From Basidiobolus meristosporus CBS 931.73 (lineage: Eukaryota; Fungi; Basidiobolomycota), in contig MCFE01000013.1 in the NCBI GenBank assembly GCA_002104905.1, positions 62,001 through 126,000 on the forward strand: a stretch of DNA of 64,000 nucleotides. The letters run 5' to 3'. Under the pieces are notes generated by a model. It was not told the origin of the DNA. It saw only the letters and a list, made by a program, of their open reading frames with translations, and searched no databases. Both the position numbers and the translations under genes were made by a program. Within the stretch, counting starts at the first letter, position 1; each line of letters starts with the position of its first letter. Below, piece by piece: positions 50,781 through 64,000 of this stretch.

Positions 50781-52750
50781 GTCTATGTTGTGCGTTGTAT
50801 CAAGCTTCGGGTAGGATTTAAGAGGGGCAGCTTTGACTCCAGTTGGTTATAGTTGACTAAACTGGAGGGGTTTCTTTAGTAGTGAGAGCGGTCTTGGCAA
50901 TGAGAATGGGAAGTTGTGGTTAAGTAAATTGAATATTTAGTGATGATAAGATAGGGCTGAAACCAAGATTTTCATATTAACCGCGTGGTTATATTCAGTT
51001 ATTCAGGCCAATACCCTTTCGGCCTGATCCTCAGGGAAGGTCGAGCCGAATCGAAAACCGAAGTGTGACCATGGATGACATCAACACTCGGTGAAAGGTC
51101 GAGTTCCATGGTGACTAATCAGATGATCGTATTGGCGATCATTCTGTGCATAATTCTTATTATTGGTCTGACAGCATGAAAGGTTCGACGATAAATCCCC
51201 TCCATTATTCATCGTTCTACACTCACTGCAAGGCTAAAGGCTAGGCTATAAACATGCCCGTTGACCAGGGGCAGATGCTACATTGAATAAATGAATCCTT
51301 ATTAGTGTGTAATTTCAACGAAAACTGTAATCATCTAAGATTCTCACCTGTCATCATTAGAACATAATACCATGTTGTCCTGATCATATTAAGTATATTC
51401 AAACCCAATTGAATGGTGTTATGAGGATCCTTTTTATTTCCAAGGAATGCATTAGCTAAAAATCATTCTCTATTATTCTAATACTTTTCCGATTCCATAG
51501 CCAGGTTGACTATATACTAATTGGGTACAACATTAGAGATGTGTAGCATCAGTGGTATTTTATTATGCTTTTAGGTGCAACAATCGCCATCCATTTGAAA
51601 TTTTCTAAGGGGTATGGTGGAGTATTAGAATGCATGCTAGAGATGTAAACAGGGTGTTCAAAGTAAGTGGAGGTGATTCTGAGAATCTTGGAGTATGCCA
51701 TTAACTTTTTGGTTGATTGGGTTAATATAGAATGTGTACAAAATGAAGAGAGTGGGCAAAAGTGTGGATTCTTGCTGGGTTAACACTAAATTAATCAAGT
51801 ATAAAGATATGATACATCAATAACCATACATAATACTCATCCTTTGCAACAGTTATGATCCAGCTACACTCTAAGAATTATATGTATCACAGAGAAATTC
51901 CAGATGGAAGCCATCAAAATACCAAATGAATATGAGCAGAAATTCAACTTGGATTATACTTAAACTTTTCAAAAATAAAGATTATAGAACACTCCTGTGT
52001 CTTTTTGAGCAATCATGAGAAGTACAAAATTTAGGACTATTTTTTGTTGTAAGAGTCTTGGAGATATTGGAAGTGATTTGGAGAACAAGTAGATTATGTG
52101 GTTTTCACTTAATGATTTATTGAATGAAAAAGTAGTATTTATACTTTTACATGGTCTTGGCATTACAAACACGTAGAATAGGTTAAGGAAGGTCCCAAGA
52201 ACATGTGTGCAAAGTTTGGGGCTGTTTGGACAACTTTGAGAATTTTCATGTTCTGGGTACCTGGTATTTTGGTGAAAATATTCTAAGTAAATCCCGACAA
52301 GGAATTTGGTCAGTATTCTCTAGGATTTGAAGGTGATGATCTAAGTGACTAAGTTAGGTGAATATTTAGGTGGAAAATACGAATTTTTACAACATTTTTT
52401 GGGTGGAGTACCATCTCAAGACCGTATTGAAAGGGTATGAATTCTGTTAAAAATCCAATATTGAAATTTCTGATGGGGATTGCCTTAACTGTACATAAAC
52501 TGATTGATATTCTAGTTCAAACACTAAGAAAAGGAACAAATCCAAAACCTATGATTCAGATTCAGAAAAGGTACATGATCAGAAGGTCAGCGGAGTTCGA
52601 ATCGGAAACCAGATAGTAGATTCAAAGGCTTGCCTCTGTTTGCATGACTCAAGAGGTTTACTCCCAAGTAAAATAGCTATAAGCGCTCAAGATAAAAATT
52701 CTGATAACTAGGGTATCCTATCAAATTTTATTGAGGTGTACTCGTTATAA

Positions 52751-52994
52751 GCAAAAGAATCGCCATCTGAGGTTCACCTACAAGGCATTGAAAGGAGACG
52801 GCGAAAGCATTGGGTATTGCCGCTGGTGGAAAGATCAAGTGTCATTACAACGAGATGAGGTTGTCAGAGATCGCCCAAGCGTTTGAGGAACTGGATAATG
52901 TAATGGTTGCTGGCCGTATTGTTCTGAATTTATGTCTGGCGTATTTCTCATGGAGAGGGGCAATAAAACATACCAAATCAACTTCTGAATCATA
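52751..52994 (+). pseudogene. Remnant of the 3' end and 3' UTR of an ADH gene, paralogous to about 54007-54250
   Basis: AAAAGAATC(G/A)CCATC...AAGCATTGGGTATTGC...AGAGATCGCCCAAGCGTTTGAGGAACT...GCAATAAAACATACCAAATCAA is shared with the end of ADH-a. No upstream ADH sequence is present. Confidence 0.9.
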
Positions 52995-53109
52995 CTTGGA
53001 GTTGTTATTCTGTTCATGTACAAGCCACTCATTCCAAAGCAATAAACCGTCAAATAATCGCACAGGTTTCGCATGAACAAATGCATGAAAATCGTAACAC
53101 TCAAAATAG

Positions 53110-53116
53110 TATAAAA
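53110..53116 (+). promoter_or_regulatory. TATA box of ADH-a
   Basis: TATAAAA about 35 bp upstream of the ATG at 53149. Confidence 0.55.
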
Positions 53117-53148
53117 AGGAAGCTTGCAATTAAGAAAGGTAATCTATA

Positions 53149-54201
53149 ATGTCTATTCAACTCCCAAAGACTCAGTTGGCAGCTTGCATAATAGCCCCCA
53201 AAGGCCCTCTAAAAATTGACTATATTGCAGTACCTCAACCAGGTCCTGAGGAAGTACTCATCAAGCTTGAATATTCTGGTGTCTGTCACACTGATGTTCA
53301 TATAGCTGAAGGTGAGCTAATGGTGCTTCAGGAGTTTCCTCGAGTCGGTGGTCATGAAGGCACCGGGAAGGTGATATCTGTTGGAGAAAGGGTAAGTGGC
53401 GTTCGAATTGGGGATAGGGTAGGGATTTCATGGCTTTCCTCCACTTGCATGAACTGTGAGGATTGTTTCCAAGGCAATGAAACTGTGTGCACTCAACAGA
53501 AGAACTCTGGATGCACGGTTGATGGAAGTTTCCAGGAATATTGTGTTGCTCGTGCTACTCATATTGCTCGTATTCCGGATAGTCTTCCCCTAGCTGATGC
53601 AGCTCCTATACTCTGTGCAGGTATTACTGTCTATAAAGGCCTCAAAGAGAGTAAAGTTCGCGCTGGGCAATTTGTCGCAATTGTTGGTGCAGGTGGAGGA
53701 CTTGGTCACCTGGCTGTCCAGTATGCCAAGGCAATGGGTATGCGAGTCATCGCTGTAGATACTGGTGATGAGAAACGCAACTTGTGTACACAAATTGGTG
53801 CCGAGTACTTCATCGACTTCAAGAAAGAAAATGTCATCCAGGAGGTTCAGAAAATAACGACTTCGGGAGCCCACGGAGTCATAGTTCTCTCAACAGCTGA
53901 CAAATCCTATCAAGACTCGGTGAAGTATACACGTCGCTGTGGCAGTGTTATATGTATAGGTGTTATTCGAGGTGGTCTTGGAGTATTCCCTATTGCTGAG
54001 CTTGTAGCCAAAAGAATCACCATCCGTGGTTCACTCATAGGGAACCGACAGGAGATGGCGGAAGCATTGGGTATTGCTGCTAGTGGAAAGATCAAGTGTC
54101 ATTACAAAGAGATGAAGTTGTCAGAGATCGCCCAAGCGTTTGAGGAACTTAAGAATGGAGCGGTTGCTGGCCGTATTGTTCTGAATTTAAGTCAGTCGTA
54201 A
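53149..54201 (+). CDS. Zinc-dependent medium-chain alcohol dehydrogenase (ADH-a, divergent paralog), intronless
   Basis: GVCHTD, GGHEG, structural-zinc CxxCxxCx7C, PILCAG, GAGGGLG, and Asp at AVDTG (NAD-type). Confidence 0.95.
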   Translation: MSIQLPKTQLAACIIAPKGPLKIDYIAVPQPGPEEVLIKLEYSGVCHTDVHIAEGELMVLQEFPRVGGHEGTGKVISVGERVSGVRIGDRVGISWLSSTCMNCEDCFQGNETVCTQQKNSGCTVDGSFQEYCVARATHIARIPDSLPLADAAPILCAGITVYKGLKESKVRAGQFVAIVGAGGGLGHLAVQYAKAMGMRVIAVDTGDEKRNLCTQIGAEYFIDFKKENVIQEVQKITTSGAHGVIVLSTADKSYQDSVKYTRRCGSVICIGVIRGGLGVFPIAELVAKRITIRGSLIGNRQEMAEALGIAASGKIKCHYKEMKLSEIAQAFEELKNGAVAGRIVLNLSQS

Positions 54202-54629
54202 TTCTCATGGAGGGGCAATAAAACATACCAAATCAATTTCTGAGGCATACCGTAAGACGTCATTCTAGCTCGATCCCAGTCTAGACAAGCAGTGTGAAAG
54301 TTTCAATCAGTAGTACAAACATACTGGTTTGATTTTAGACCTAATTCAGATATACATCTCGACTGTCATTTATAAGCCACCCAAATCGCAAAGAAAACAA
54401 ATGTTTATGGGATGGCAGTTGTGATTGATAGTCACACTGACCCAGAATTTTCAGATTATGTACAGTGGACAATGCTGGGTGAATGTTGTTACCCCATTTC
54501 CCACGTACATTACCTGGATTGAATTGAATTTGAGATTACATTCGGATAAAATCCGAGATATGAGAAAGTACTCGAATCAAGATTCGGGAAAATGAGAATC
54601 TATGTGAACCAACACGCAAAGATAGCTAG

Positions 54630-54637
54630 TATATAAA
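54630..54637 (+). promoter_or_regulatory. TATA box of ADH-b
   Basis: TATATAAA about 55 bp upstream of the ATG at 54691. Confidence 0.6.
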
Positions 54638-54690
54638 TAGAAGGCCTCCAACTACCACTTGACCAAACAAACCAACAGTTGATACCAAAC

Positions 54691-55749
54691 ATGTCTGCTC
54701 AACAACTCCCCAAAACCCAAAAGGCAGCTGTCATTGAATCTCATGACAAACCAGTCGAAATCAAAGATATCCCTGTTCCTGAACCAGGCCCTGAAGATGT
54801 CCTGATCAAAATTGAATACTCCGGAGTCTGCCACACTGACCTTCACGCTGCCGAGGGTGATTGGCCTATCCCAACAAAGCTCCCATTAGTAGGCGGCCAC
54901 GAAGGTGCTGGAAAAGTGGTAGCTTTAGGGGAGAAGGTCAAGGGCTTCAAGATTGGTGATAGCGTTGGTGTTGTGTGGCTTCATTCCGCATGCTTGAGTT
55001 GTGAATACTGTATCGCAGGCCGGGAGACTGTATGTACTCAGCAACAAAATTCTGGTTACAGTGTCGATGGAAGTTTCCAAGAATACTGCGTAGCTCGCGC
55101 TTCTCACGTTGCTCGTATCCCAGATAATCTTCCCCTTGCTGAGGCCGCACCAATTCTTTGTGCAGGTGTCACTGTTTATAAGGGACTTAAGGAGACTGAA
55201 GTTCGTGCGGGTCAGTTTGTCACAGTTGTTGGGGCAGGTGGAGGCCTTGGACATTTGGCCGTTCAATATGCTAAGGCAATGGGTATGAATGTCATTGCTG
55301 TGGATACCGGGGATGATAAGAAGAACCTTTGCACTAAGGATTTGGGTGCTGACTTCTTCGTTGACTTCATGAAGGATGACGTTGTTGCTGAGGTGAAGAA
55401 AATCACTAATGGTGGATCTCATGGAGTTTTGCTCCTCTCTCCGGCCGAAAAACCTTTCCAACAGGCTGTCGATTATACACGTCGTTGGGGAACCGTTGCC
55501 TGTATTGCTCTTCCCGCGGGTGCCAAGGGCTCATTCCCCGTCTTTGATCTTGTTCTTCAACGTTTAACAATCCGTGGCTCCATTGTTGGCAATCGTCAAG
55601 ATTTGGCCGAGGCTCTGGAGTTTGCTGCAAACGGAAAAGTGAAATGCTATTATAAGACTTTGGGCTTGAAAGATCTTCCCCAAGTGTATAAGGATATGCA
55701 CGATGGTAAAATTGCTGGCCGTATTGTCCTTGATTTGCAACAGAACTAA
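54691..55749 (+). CDS. ADH1: Zinc/NAD alcohol dehydrogenase, Adh1-like (ADH-b), intronless
   Basis: MSAQQLPKTQKAAV, CHTDLHAAEGDWP, VGGHEGAG, APILCAGVTVYKGLK, GAGGGLG and IAGRIVLD. Confidence 0.95.
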   Translation: MSAQQLPKTQKAAVIESHDKPVEIKDIPVPEPGPEDVLIKIEYSGVCHTDLHAAEGDWPIPTKLPLVGGHEGAGKVVALGEKVKGFKIGDSVGVVWLHSACLSCEYCIAGRETVCTQQQNSGYSVDGSFQEYCVARASHVARIPDNLPLAEAAPILCAGVTVYKGLKETEVRAGQFVTVVGAGGGLGHLAVQYAKAMGMNVIAVDTGDDKKNLCTKDLGADFFVDFMKDDVVAEVKKITNGGSHGVLLLSPAEKPFQQAVDYTRRWGTVACIALPAGAKGSFPVFDLVLQRLTIRGSIVGNRQDLAEALEFAANGKVKCYYKTLGLKDLPQVYKDMHDGKIAGRIVLDLQQN

Positions 55750-55928
55750 TGACCTTCGTCTGTTGACTTTACGTTCTGTACATTACAGGACCAATTTTGT
55801 CGTTTTTTGACTCCATTAAACATTTAAAAACACATTACAGAATAGTGCTTTATTTTACAGGCTCTAAATGGAATGCCTACTTGAAATCGTGATCAACATG
55901 AAAATCTATTTAGCTATTAACAAGAATA

Positions 55929-57687
<1,759 letters not shown>

Positions 57688-57728
57688 TTACGCTACGATT
57701 TAACTGCTACCTAACGTTAATACCGAGT

Positions 57729-57735
57729 TTTTATA
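57729..57735 (-). promoter_or_regulatory. TATA box of PDC-A
   Basis: TATAAAA on the minus strand about 45 bp upstream of the ATG at 57684. Confidence 0.55.
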
Positions 57736-58747
57736 TCTTTTAAGTGGTTATACTTGTCTATAGACCTATCTAGAAGCCCGTCTAACACGATCCTAATATT
57801 TCCACATCTGAAATCTCATCATGAGGAATTATCCCAACTCGAAATCCGGCATATATGAATTAACGCAAATATGTGCAGCATTGTGATCATCGTATCACAC
57901 CTAACTTTCCAAAATATTTAGGCGTAGGGTTAGATCAGAGATCGATTGGGTTTCCATATATGGGCCTCTGCGAGTAGCATGCTCCTTCAGATTACTAAAT
58001 ATGCTTACACTTGAACGAAGTTTTCTGATGCCATGAATGAAATACCATGGTGCGATCAATAACCTCAAAATGCTGTCAGGCTACAAGATACAAACTGGTA
58101 AAATTATATACCCAGCTGTCTATTTTAATTTCAATGCTTCAGTAACACTAACCTACAATTTTAAACAACTATATTGATTGGTATGTCATTACTTAATTAA
58201 TCGCCAGTCACTGAGATAGACTTAAATGAAGATACTGTACCAGTAGTTCAGTCATTTCAACTCAATTGACGATATCAAACACGCATTGAGCCTAAAGCAT
58301 TGCACTTCAATATGCTAATGTTTGAAGTGACAAGTTCTAACCAGCTTCCAGGACTGACCAATTTCTCAGTTGTCTGGCCCATACTTCATATAAATATAAA
58401 ACACAACGCTTCCTCTTATCCGGGATATTCCGAAGAATAGTAGATAGCTTTCACTGTAAACACATCCAATTCATTTTCAAATACGGAATTCTTGGATTAA
58501 CCAAGCCATGGACCAGAGTGGGGCATAGTCCAGGCAATACCTCTATATGGGAGTAGATATAAGTGTGTCTCAGTGCTACCATATGTGATCGATTGGTGGA
58601 ATGCTGATCAAAAAGGGTCCTTTTGGGAAAAAATCCTAAATCAACACCTGGATTTGCTGAATTTGTTGGGAAGTTTACTTTAACCGGTCATTTAAACATC
58701 ATTGGCTGATTGAAATCACTGATAAAGATGTTGTGGAAATCCTGTAA

Positions 58748-58754
58748 TATAAAT
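58748..58754 (+). promoter_or_regulatory. TATA box of PDC-B
   Basis: TATAAAT about 55 bp upstream of the ATG at 58808. Confidence 0.55.
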
Positions 58755-58756
58755 AA

Positions 58757-60561
<1,805 letters not shown>

Positions 60562-61099
60562 ATTTGTTGTCAATATATATTTGGAGTGAATACCCATACA
60601 TATCTAATATAGACTCTGTATAATAAAACACAGTAAAATATCAATTCTTGAGGTAATTATATCATTATTGCTGAACATTGGAGCGACTTGGAAACCTGGA
60701 CTTGATCATTACGAACTTAGATTCGTATTCTATATAATATCCTACCAATTGCCAATTCGTACTCATTGCATGAATGGTGCTAATTGCTAGCCCGTAGAAT
60801 TTACATATTTGAATGGAGCAAAGAAATAGTATATGATAATTTAGGTAGTTGAATCAAAGGTTCTTGCACTGTTTGGGCTGCCACGTTGAAGGACCCGATA
60901 TTGGTGGCGACAAAATTTTTGGCTATCATTCGACTCATACTCAGATCTTAAAGATTGAGTAAATATGTACTAGGAACGAATTCATCACATATTTAGCAAT
61001 TGTAAATACACATGGAGCAGTGGGTACAAATATAGAAATCAGATGTCAAATATTTTTTCATTCAGAAGTAAATCGGGCTGAGCAGGAGTAGCAATAGAA

Positions 61100-61106
61100 T
61101 ATAAAT
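61100..61106 (+). promoter_or_regulatory. TATA box of PDC-C
   Basis: TATAAAT about 55 bp upstream of the ATG at 61159. Confidence 0.55.
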
Positions 61107-61158
61107 AAACGGGTGTTGCATAGCGCAATAGTCAGTGTGTTCCACTAATTCTTACAAA

Positions 61159-62917
61159 ATGGCTTCTAACATGCAAACTATGACCGTGAAGCAAGTACCT
61201 CATCCTTCGTTTGAAGGAGATCGGTATCGATGACTTGTTCTCCGTTCCCGGTGACTTCAACCTGGTCTTCCTTGGACCGTGTCCAAGACTCCGGCCTCAT
61301 CAACCTCATTGGTGACTGCAACGAGTTGAACGCTTCCTATGCTGCCGATGGTTATGCCAGAGTCAAGGGTGTTGGTGTAAGTAGCGAGCACTATTAATTA
61401 TGAAATGAAGTAGTAACGAGTGAGTACTAATGATATGATTTGCAATGAACAATAGGCCATCATCACTACCTTCGGTGTCGGTGAGCTCAGCTGCTGTCAA
61501 CGGTATTGCCGGTTCCTACTCCGAGATGGTTCCCGTTGTCAAGATCACTGGTACCCCCAACACCAAGTCCCAAGCTTCCGGAGCCCTCCTCCATCACACT
61601 CTTGGTAACGGAGACTTCCGTGCCTTCCAAAAGATGTTCAGCCACATCACCGTGACCAACACCACCTTGTTGCCTCACAACGCTGCTGCTGAGATCGACC
61701 GTGTATTGACTGAGTGTGTCCAAAAGGTCCGCCCTGTGTACATCTCTCTTCCCACTGATGTTGTCGATGCCGAGATCACTGTTGACATGAAGCCCTTGAA
61801 CCTTGCCCTTCCCGCTAACCCCGAGAAGACTGAGGCCGCTTGTGTCCGTGAGATTGTCAACGCTGTTGCCAAGGCAAAGAAGCCCATCATTGTTGCTGAT
61901 GCCTGTGCCATCCGTCACCACTGCGAAAAGGAGCTTCTTGAGCTGATCGAGAAGACCGGCTTGCCTTACTACACTACCCCCATGGGCAAGGCTGTCATTG
62001 GTGAAGACCATCCTCAGTTCCGCGGTATCTATGTTGGATCCCTCTCCAGCCCCAGAGTCAAGGAGGAGGTTGAGGGCGCTGACCTCATCCTCAGTGTTGG
62101 TGGCTTGAAGTCCGACTTCAACACCGGATCCTTCTCCTACCGCATGGACGCTGAGAAGACTGTCGAGATCCACTCTGACTACACTGATGTGTTCTACGGT
62201 ACCTACAAGGCTGTTGGTATGAAGTACTTGTTGCCTAAGCTTGCTGCTGCCATTCCCAAGCGCGAGGTCCAAAGCATCAACCTCCACGTCGAGCTCCCCA
62301 AGATCGACATGAAGGCCATGGTTCCTCAAGCCTGGTTCTGGAACAGAATGGGCAAGTTCTTCAAGCCTAACGACATTGTCCTTGCTGAGACCGGTACCTC
62401 CGTGTTCGGCTGCTTGAACTCTCACATGCCCGAGGGTGCCACCTTCATCTCCCAGATTCTCTGGGGTTCCATTGGTTACACCGTTGGTGGATGTCTTGGA
62501 GCTGCTGTTGCCGGACAAGAGCGTCGTGTTATCTTGTTTGTCGGTGATGGTTCCTTCCAGCTCACCTGCCAAGAAGTGTCGGTCATGATCCGTCTTGGTC
62601 TCCGCCCCATCATCTTCTTGTTGAACAACAACGGCTACACCATTGAGCGTTTGATCCACGGAGTCAAGCGTACCTACAATGACATTGACAACTGGGACTT
62701 CAGCAAGACCCTTGACTACTTCGGTGGTGCTGCTGGTCAAGACAAGATTGGATTCCAAGGCCGTGCCAACACTGCTGGTGAGTTTGAGCAAGTGTTGAAG
62801 AAGGTCGAGAGCCACGCCGACAAGATCAACTTTGTTGAGGTCATGATGGACTGGTTGGATGCCCCTGAGAACTTGGTCAAGCAAGCTGAAGCTTCTGCCG
62901 CTCTTAACCGCTCTTAG
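61159..62917 (+). CDS. PDC1: Pyruvate decarboxylase copy C; three apparent single-base insertions in the 5' part (about 61188, 61271, 61491)
   Basis: Near-identical to copies A and B from exon 2 onward. As written, exon 1 reaches TGA at 61231. Confidence 0.88.
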
Positions 62918-63759
62918 ATTCATATAAATTTCCCAAATTAGATTGTACATTAAGTGATTAATAAAACTATGTTAACACAAACTTATTATATTGAGTACAA
63001 GATGTTTGAGAGCCATAATGACCAGGCCTATTCTATCCAAGCAAAAATTTGTTGTTTACACTATCGTGGTCAATCTTGTCAAGAAGCAGTGGCCCATTTG
63101 AGCAGAGAATCGTTTTGTAATTGACAATTTGATTTGTGACTATAATCAATTGGATCTTTTAGAGCATTATTTTTGACGTAAGTGATTTAAACCTTACCCC
63201 AAGTAGTTGGTGTATTTGAAATTACAATATTTCTCATAAACATTCTCCGTAGCCACTGATCGATTGTTTCGTGTGTTTGAAACAGATTAATCGTATTATT
63301 AATTTCTTCAGCCAGTCGCTATTAATTATTATGTATGTCTATTTTTCACCTTTTGAAGGGTTTTGATTCTCCCAACTTGGTATTATCCTTGCTCAATTTT
63401 CTTAATGAAGTTATCAATTCGACAATTTCAATGTTGGCATCATGTCGGTTTCCCAATGGGCTAATAACAGCTGGACCAATGATCTTTGTTAAGGTATTCT
63501 AGAACAATTGCAATTGCAGTTTATCACACTACTGTCTACTAATAAAGCTCTATCATCGTCGATGAATAAAAGCAATTGGATTCATTCATTTTACGTGGTT
63601 GTGAGAATGCTAGTGAAAATCGGACCAGATAGTATCCATAAGGAAATCCCACTTGCGCATGTAGCATACTCTACATAATTGGTAGTCTTTCTGTATTAGG
63701 ACGCTTGCTTTGGTAGCAATCAGTTCTAGTGTATACGATATTATCGGGATGCTATGGTA

Positions 63760-63767
63760 TATATAAA
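63760..63767 (+). promoter_or_regulatory. TATA box of PDC-D
   Basis: TATATAAA about 60 bp upstream of the ATG at 63825. Confidence 0.55.
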
Positions 63768-63824
63768 GCGATCGAAATGCTACAAACATCATCAAACTAC
63801 TATTAGTTTTGTCCCACTACTAAG

Positions 63825-64000
63825 ATGGCTTCCAACATGCAAACTATGACTGTCAGCAAGTACCTCATCCTTCGTTTGAAGGAGATCGGTATCGATGACT
63901 TGTTCTCCGTTCCCGGTGACTTCAACTTGGTTTTCCTGGACCGTGTCCAAGACTCCGGCCTCATCAACCTCATTGGTGACTGCAACGAGTTGAACGCTTC
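63825..64000 (+). CDS. PDC1: Pyruvate decarboxylase copy D, 5' part only (runs off the window)
   Basis: [58 protein letters not shown], in frame. Confidence 0.92.
   Translation, partial: MASNMQTMTVSKYLILRLKEIGIDDLFSVPGDFNLVFLDRVQDSGLINLIGDCNELNA

Follow-up and report, generated by a model that had tools for sequence, protein, structure and literature searches.

A 69-kb block of pyruvate decarboxylase and alcohol dehydrogenase genes in Basidiobolus meristosporus, a probable concertedly evolving dosage array

Why would a fungus keep the genes for two consecutive steps of primary metabolism side by side, and in so many copies? The question is raised by a stretch of the genome of Basidiobolus meristosporus CBS 931.73 (contig MCFE01000013.1, 260,741 bp, of assembly GCA_002104905.1), in which an earlier note made from the sequence had described six genes for pyruvate decarboxylase (PDC) and alcohol dehydrogenase (ADH) as an amplified cluster. 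The window, that is, the whole stretch of 64,000 nucleotides that was analysed, comprises bases 62001-126000 of the contig, and all positions given here are those of the window, with the numbering continued past 64000. Together with six overlapping contig loci, whose overlaps agreed without conflict, the window yields 123 kb of continuous sequence, and mapping with tblastn places in it a single PDC-ADH block of 68,920 bp (52744-121663) holding 12 PDC genes, 17 full-length yeast-type zinc ADH genes and four gene fragments. The reading that we favour, with a probability of roughly 70%, is that these 69 kb form one concertedly evolving dosage array for the formation of ethanol.

The two halves of the block are organised differently. 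Its left half is a run of PDC genes, PDC-A inverted and PDC-B to PDC-G in tandem, with spacers of 596-1504 bp, and in its right half the PDC and ADH families are interleaved. The 17 full-length ADH genes encode proteins of 350-352 residues (ADH-o is slightly longer). Only one gene model in the block belongs to neither family: it has 189 residues, carries no Pfam domain and lies at 88831-89747, in the spacer between PDC-I and ADH-g, where its longest open reading frame (ORF; 100 residues) likewise has no Pfam match. No regulator or transporter was seen in the block, which is bordered on the right by a DNA_pol_A_exo1 gene.

What the earlier note had described at the left edge of this block largely holds. 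ORFs, Pfam domains and DNA alignment place ADH-a, ADH-b and PDC-A to PDC-D where they had been reported, no other ORF with a Pfam domain lies between them, and the tail-to-tail distance between ADH-b and PDC-A, put at about 180 bp, measures 179 bp. The array had been said to continue past the window end, and with the flanks retrieved it does so for another 57.7 kb, to 121663. The AT-rich gap that was thought to separate it from a housekeeping block is also there (Table 1), and Pfam matches on the ORFs to its left identify SNAP, followed by ribosomal L2, TIP49 and cyclin genes. The description of all six genes as intact or near-intact needs to be divided: ADH-a, ADH-b, PDC-A and PDC-D are intact, whereas PDC-B and PDC-C are frameshifted as assembled.

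An array for ethanol formation presupposes enzymes of the right kind. We ran similarity searches with the exon-2 ORF of the PDC genes or with database proteins, and Pfam finds TPP_enzyme_N, TPP_enzyme_M and TPP_enzyme_C all present in the ORFs of exons 1 and 2, in agreement with the domains of the full-length products P0001 and P0003. The structures of PDC from Kluyveromyces lactis and Saccharomyces cerevisiae are matched at E values of about 1e-160 (6e-160), and in the alignment to K. lactis PDC (2vjy) Asp28, Glu51, His114/His115, Cys221, Ile476/Glu477 and the GDGS...NN motif for thiamine diphosphate (ThDP) and magnesium are all conserved. The GYTIE and ADAC motifs of the array line up with those of yeast PDC that hold Ile476 and Cys221; we take the roles of the aligned residues, namely catalysis, the small-substrate pocket at Ile476 and substrate activation at Cys221, from established knowledge of the yeast enzymes. 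As the earlier note had proposed from the motifs, the genes are thus predicted to encode true pyruvate decarboxylases. On the side of ADH, a core copy matches tetrameric zinc enzymes of the yeast ADH3/ADH1 type (E 2e-114), with the catalytic and structural zinc ligands and the NAD site kept in the alignment to 5yat (GVCHTDLH, GHEGAG, the four-Cys structural site, PILCAGVT, GAGGGLG and the Asp in VAVDTG), and this yeast-type ADH3 is also the best PDB match of ADH-a (E 5e-102).

Could enzymes of these families serve another end? Three such ends come into view, namely the production of Ehrlich-type fusel alcohols from the 2-oxo acids of amino acids, the use of ethanol or acetaldehyde as a weapon against gut bacteria, and the consumption of ethanol; together we consider them unlikely. 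Some members of the PDC family do decarboxylate branched-chain or aromatic 2-oxo acids and score nearly as high as PDC itself (the branched-chain enzyme 9axw at E 6e-158), metagenomic homologs of the ADHs are labelled propanol-preferring, and the gut habitat is common to the fungus and bacteria (PMC7466969), but two marks of true PDCs, the pocket at Ile476/Glu477 and the activation site at Cys221, are retained in the array, its best structural matches are the fermentative PDC and ADH of yeast, and a fungus consuming ethanol would not need PDC.

The nearest relatives of these proteins outside the genus are fungal: other early-diverging fungi for PDC, at about 50% identity, and fungal ADH1-type proteins for ADH, at 56-60%. 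Because of these fungal affinities, a bacterial origin of the intronless ADHs by horizontal transfer, which was considered as a candidate, is not indicated and was set aside. PDCs of bdelloid rotifers (Adineta, Rotaria and Didymodactylos) rank among the fungal matches with identities of about 48-49%, as expected if rotifers acquired a fungal-type PDC.

The central evidence for a maintained array comes from the way in which its copies vary. Within PDC-A to PDC-K, coding DNA is 95.8-98.8% identical and protein 97.6-100%; with exon columns joined and the inserted bases left out as alignment columns, the mean synonymous divergence (dS) is 0.094 and the mean nonsynonymous divergence (dN) 0.0046, a ratio of 0.05. 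The ADH core behaves in the same manner (dS 0.155, dN 0.007), and five of its copies encode one identical protein despite a dS of 0.06-0.14. Both families are under strong purifying selection. The amplified, nearly identical set consists of eleven PDC and about 13 ADH copies and has strong codon bias, with an effective number of codons (ENC) of 35-39 in the amplified copies against 47-50 in neighbouring genes, 52.7 in PDC-L, 55.5 in ADH-a and 46.4 in ADH-b; this bias suggests high expression. Outside the homogenised set stand old paralogs, namely PDC-L (dN 0.076, dS saturated) and, with a dN of 0.31 and 0.10 to the amplified set, ADH-a and ADH-b. The amplification claimed in the earlier note is therefore real and far larger than what could be seen there, but the two ADH genes in the window are old divergent paralogs of weak codon bias that do not belong to the amplified set.

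Outside the genes the picture is very different. The 150 nucleotides just beyond the PDC start and stop codons are 53-68% identical among copies, against 57% for shuffled sequence, with the sole exception of the upstream side of PDC-H to PDC-K, and with the genes masked the similarity among spacers is patchy (67-94%). In the run of ADH-j, -k, -l and -m, for instance, spacers are 67-84% alike and genes about 97% alike. The 79-nt PDC intron, on the other hand, is 87-100% identical among copies. The array appears old, given that similarity among its spacers has fallen to chance level or to 67-94% identity, and since the flanks cannot be aligned, the copies are not simply recent duplicates, their near-identity pointing instead to concerted evolution. 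The variable sites themselves form mosaics: 131 coding positions vary in this way among the copies, 57% (PDC) and 50% (ADH) of informative site pairs fail the four-gamete test, and a permutation test of the pairwise homoplasy index (PHI) type yields p=0.002 for PDC and, for ADH, 0 of 2000 permutations (<0.0005). Taken together, these data fit an old array whose gene bodies, the PDC intron included, are homogenised by gene conversion and whose proteins are held by selection.

An array of this age might also be a decaying one, left behind by a neutral burst of tandem duplication, with several pseudogenes and no benefit from dosage. Such decay would account for the frameshifts that PDC-B, PDC-C, PDC-F and ADH-f show as assembled and for the four gene fragments (ADH at 52744, 115000 and 121024, PDC at 76875), the last of which is the relic of a lost PDC copy. 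We nevertheless judge it quite unlikely, because dN/dS is about 0.05 for all copies, the frameshifted ones among them, because the amplified copies are strongly codon-biased, and because divergence in the spacers greatly exceeds that in the genes, which means that the copies have been retained for long.

The insertions behind the frameshifts also follow the pattern of consensus errors. There are six of them in coding sequence, at 59587 in PDC-B, at about 61189, 61272 and 61491 in PDC-C, at 71190 in PDC-F and one in ADH-f; a further single-base insertion, in PDC-G, falls in the intron and is harmless, and PDC-A, -D, -E, -G, -H, -I, -J, -K and -L as well as sixteen ADHs are uninterrupted. Five of the six adjoin a site that varies among paralogs and insert the base that is the allele of another paralog, so that one copy reads C then T where other copies carry either C or T (the T inserted in PDC-B adjoins such a C/T site). 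In simulation, a random insertion would do so with a chance of 4-6% each, or about 3e-6 for five of six. The assembly was built from PacBio reads (PMC7466969). Frameshifted copies, moreover, carry no excess of amino-acid change, PDC-C and PDC-F differing by a dN of 0 at a dS of 0.058. With the alleles of two paralogs adjacent to each other at five of the six insertions, the frameshifts of these four genes are probably PacBio consensus errors that arose from mixed reads of different paralogs.

Around these insertions the public gene models are distorted (58808-62917 in the window, 70326-72082 and 75730-78479 beyond it). The model of PDC-B (578 residues) runs on into PDC-C, that of PDC-C (490 residues) begins at an ATG within the intron, and that of PDC-F has 547 residues. 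Several pairs of neighbouring ADH genes are fused in models of 413, 467 or 318 residues, and published gene counts for the family are therefore too low.

How the block arose in time can be approached through Basidiobolus ranarum, for which we used two contigs of a short-read (Illumina) assembly, JASJQH010008153 and JASJQH010006926. One contig carries cyclin, TIP49, BUD31, ribosomal L2 and SNAP, then a gap, an ADH on the plus strand and, at the contig end, the C-terminus of a PDC on the minus strand; this ADH (P0133) is 91% identical to ADH-b and occupies the same place beside the same flanking genes. The other contig matches the right part of the block, with an ortholog of PDC-L on the plus strand (93% identical) followed by two ADHs on the minus strand. 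Synteny with B. ranarum at either end thus places the block before the split of the two species. A tree built from the C-terminal 258 residues of the proteins puts the B. ranarum fragment P0006 at an equal distance from all B. meristosporus copies. Beyond the genus, where the earlier note had raised the possibility that the linkage is the ancestral state across most fungi, no ADH lies within 10 kb of PDC in Calcarisporiella thermophila, Umbelopsis ramanniana or Rhizopus delemar. Given these three PDC loci without a nearby ADH, PDC-ADH linkage does not appear general among early-diverging fungi, a statement that applies to a small sample. The PDC locus of R. delemar (CH476740.1) has other pyruvate genes in its neighbourhood, a pyruvate kinase about 7 kb downstream and an E1_dh gene (2-oxo-acid dehydrogenase E1) about 6 kb upstream, which may or may not be due to chance.

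That the block is an assembly artefact, in which PacBio misassembly or the tandem placement of haplotypes turned a single PDC or ADH gene, or a few of them, into many, is highly improbable: copies that are 96-99% identical and hold consensus-type indel errors are what such an artefact would leave, but every copy has its own flanks, which cannot be aligned with the others directly outside the coding sequence, the 131 variable positions form mosaics, spacer lengths vary from copy to copy, and in the independent B. ranarum assembly, which contains at least three distinct PDC sequences, the breaks fall exactly within PDC copies.

Selection and flank data are thus explained less well by artefact, by decay or by another role than by a concertedly evolving dosage array for ethanol formation. 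In such an array, the two enzymes would carry out the two steps from pyruvate to acetaldehyde and from acetaldehyde to ethanol, gene conversion and purifying selection would keep the gene bodies uniform, and the many copies would raise the activity of PDC and ADH to a very high level for fermentative growth. In the right half, four pairs of ADH (minus strand) and PDC (plus strand) stand head to head, ADH-d/PDC-H, ADH-f/PDC-I, ADH-h/PDC-J and ADH-i/PDC-K, with spacers of 699-706 bp, and a fifth, ADH-n/PDC-L, has a spacer of 1164 bp. Among the first four, the 250 bp adjoining the PDC start are 74-90% alike (also given as 74-99%), and between the pairs of PDC-I and PDC-J the whole spacer is 98.6% alike. 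The spacers of these four pairs, each about 700 bp long, might serve as bidirectional promoters through which the members of each pair would be co-regulated.

Several points weigh against this reading of the block. The copy number is based on a single PacBio assembly, and should the frameshifts be real, the array would include three PDC pseudogenes and one ADH pseudogene. The preference of the enzymes for pyruvate over larger 2-oxo acids is one that we infer from conserved residues, given that a branched-chain 2-oxo-acid decarboxylase scores almost as high. Strong codon bias lowers dS; the low values are due in part to selection on synonymous sites, and the difference between coding sequence and flanks may to some extent stem from this selection and not from conversion. 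Finally, among the 7- and 8-mers of ten independent PDC upstream regions, TATA-like words were the only ones above the shuffled expectation; in the absence of a common promoter motif beyond a TATA-like box, co-regulation is not supported by the sequence.

An ecological extension of the dosage array can be proposed. The strain was isolated from gecko dung, and the species has a gut phase in which it shares its habitat with bacteria (PMC7466969). A high dosage of the two enzymes would suit the oxygen-poor gut phase of such an isolate, and the block, its genes uniform through conversion, might consist in part of bidirectional ADH-PDC promoter modules and be an adaptation for making ethanol at very high capacity in that phase, the ethanol perhaps being antibacterial as well. 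We put forward this more specific proposal, for a kind of cluster that we did not find described in the searchable fungal literature, only tentatively and rate it slightly below even odds.

The coordinates of the features are collected in Table 1, and some details of the left edge and of the surroundings may be added. The ADH remnant, which the earlier note had also recognised, aligns with the 3' end of ADH-a (54002-54215) at 86% identity and matches residues 285-347 of ADH-a in tblastn, and the homology extends into the flank (52945-52995 against 54202-54250). PDC-A, whose exon structure was derived from tblastn and DNA alignment, shows no indel when compared with the remaining intact copies, carries TPP_enzyme_M and TPP_enzyme_C in exon 2 and is the only uninterrupted complete PDC gene within the window. 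In the spacer between PDC-A and PDC-B, no similarity to other PDC upstream regions was detectable. PDC-B has a dN of at most 0.006 to the other copies, PDC-A excepted. Elsewhere in the genome, a lone ADH on MCFE01000079.1 (152799-153851) is 84% identical to the amplified set; its neighbours are unrelated genes and include no PDC up to 10 kb away.

Table 1. Features of the PDC-ADH block and its left border, in window positions continued past 64000.
Feature	Position	Strand	Description
Left border spacer	50781-52743		About 2 kb, AT-rich, GC 0.34-0.40
ADH remnant	52744-52958	+	Last ~63 codons and start of 3' flank of a lost tandem copy of ADH-a
ADH-a	53149-54201	+	Intact, intronless, single 350-residue ORF; Pfam ADH_N and ADH_zinc_N
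ADH-b	54691-55749	+	Intact zinc ADH, 352 residues; Pfam domains
PDC-A	55929-57684	-	Intact; exon 1 57469-57684, 79-nt intron 57390-57468, exon 2 55929-57389
PDC-A/PDC-B spacer	57685-58807		Head-to-head, 1123 bp
PDC-B	58808-60561	+	In-frame 3-nt deletion near start; 1-nt insertion (T) at 59587, frame shifted as assembled
PDC-C	61160-62917	+	Three 1-nt insertions as assembled; frame restored after the third
PDC-D	63825-65580	+	Intact; the window holds the 5' end, 63825-64000
PDC-E to PDC-L (tblastn, as all PDC genes)	Starts 67066, 70326, 72995, 79179, 86724, 94084, 98302, 111389	+	
ADH-c to ADH-q (tblastn, as all 17 full-length ADH genes)		-	
PDC C-terminal fragment	76875-76988		38 codons, 76% identical to intact copies; between ADH-c and ADH-d
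ADH fragment (tblastn)	115000-115584		
ADH fragment (tblastn)	121024-121663		

Has such a locus been described before? A 2023 review counts 25 zinc ADH genes in B. meristosporus, the second highest number among 37 fungi, and covers neither their arrangement nor PDC (PMC10526403). In the full-text literature on PDC, ADH or fermentation in Basidiobolus and on fungal PDC/ADH clusters, subscription papers being outside the scope, we found no description of the array. Its interest lies in several directions. It offers a genomic lead on how an early-diverging fungus that passes through the gut may cope with low oxygen, and a clean example from nature of two enzyme families evolving in concert at the same time; it also shows that public annotation mis-models several copies and hence undercounts them. 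If the adaptive reading is true, the fungus would have a very high capacity to form ethanol in its gut phase, by means of a multi-copy cluster of primary metabolism of a kind undescribed among searchable fungal papers.

Among the closest known systems is the PDC-ADH neighbourhood of B. ranarum, orthologous at both ends with 91-93% identity and different in that its short-read contigs break inside the PDC copies. With PDC1 and ADH1/ADH3 of Saccharomyces and Kluyveromyces the block shares enzyme families and catalytic residues, so that pyruvate is expected to be turned into ethanol by the same two steps. In budding yeast the PDC genes, three in number, are dispersed, as are the ADH genes, whereas here 12 PDC genes are interleaved with 17 ADH genes at one locus of 69 kb, some of them head to head, which is far above the few of yeast. 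As for its mode of evolution, the CUP1, histone, ubiquitin and hsp70 arrays are concertedly evolving tandem dosage arrays, likewise composed of many near-identical copies homogenised by conversion or unequal exchange, with selection on the protein and on its amount; the Basidiobolus block differs in interleaving two enzyme families and in having spacers and orientations that vary by copy. With respect to gene content, it resembles the GAL, DAL, MAL and alc clusters, in which genes for consecutive steps are adjacent and some are divergent, and such fungal clusters of primary metabolism have been listed for Pichia stipitis (PMC2784038). Those clusters, however, hold one copy per gene and usually a regulator or transporter, whereas the Basidiobolus block is made of only two enzymes, each in many copies.

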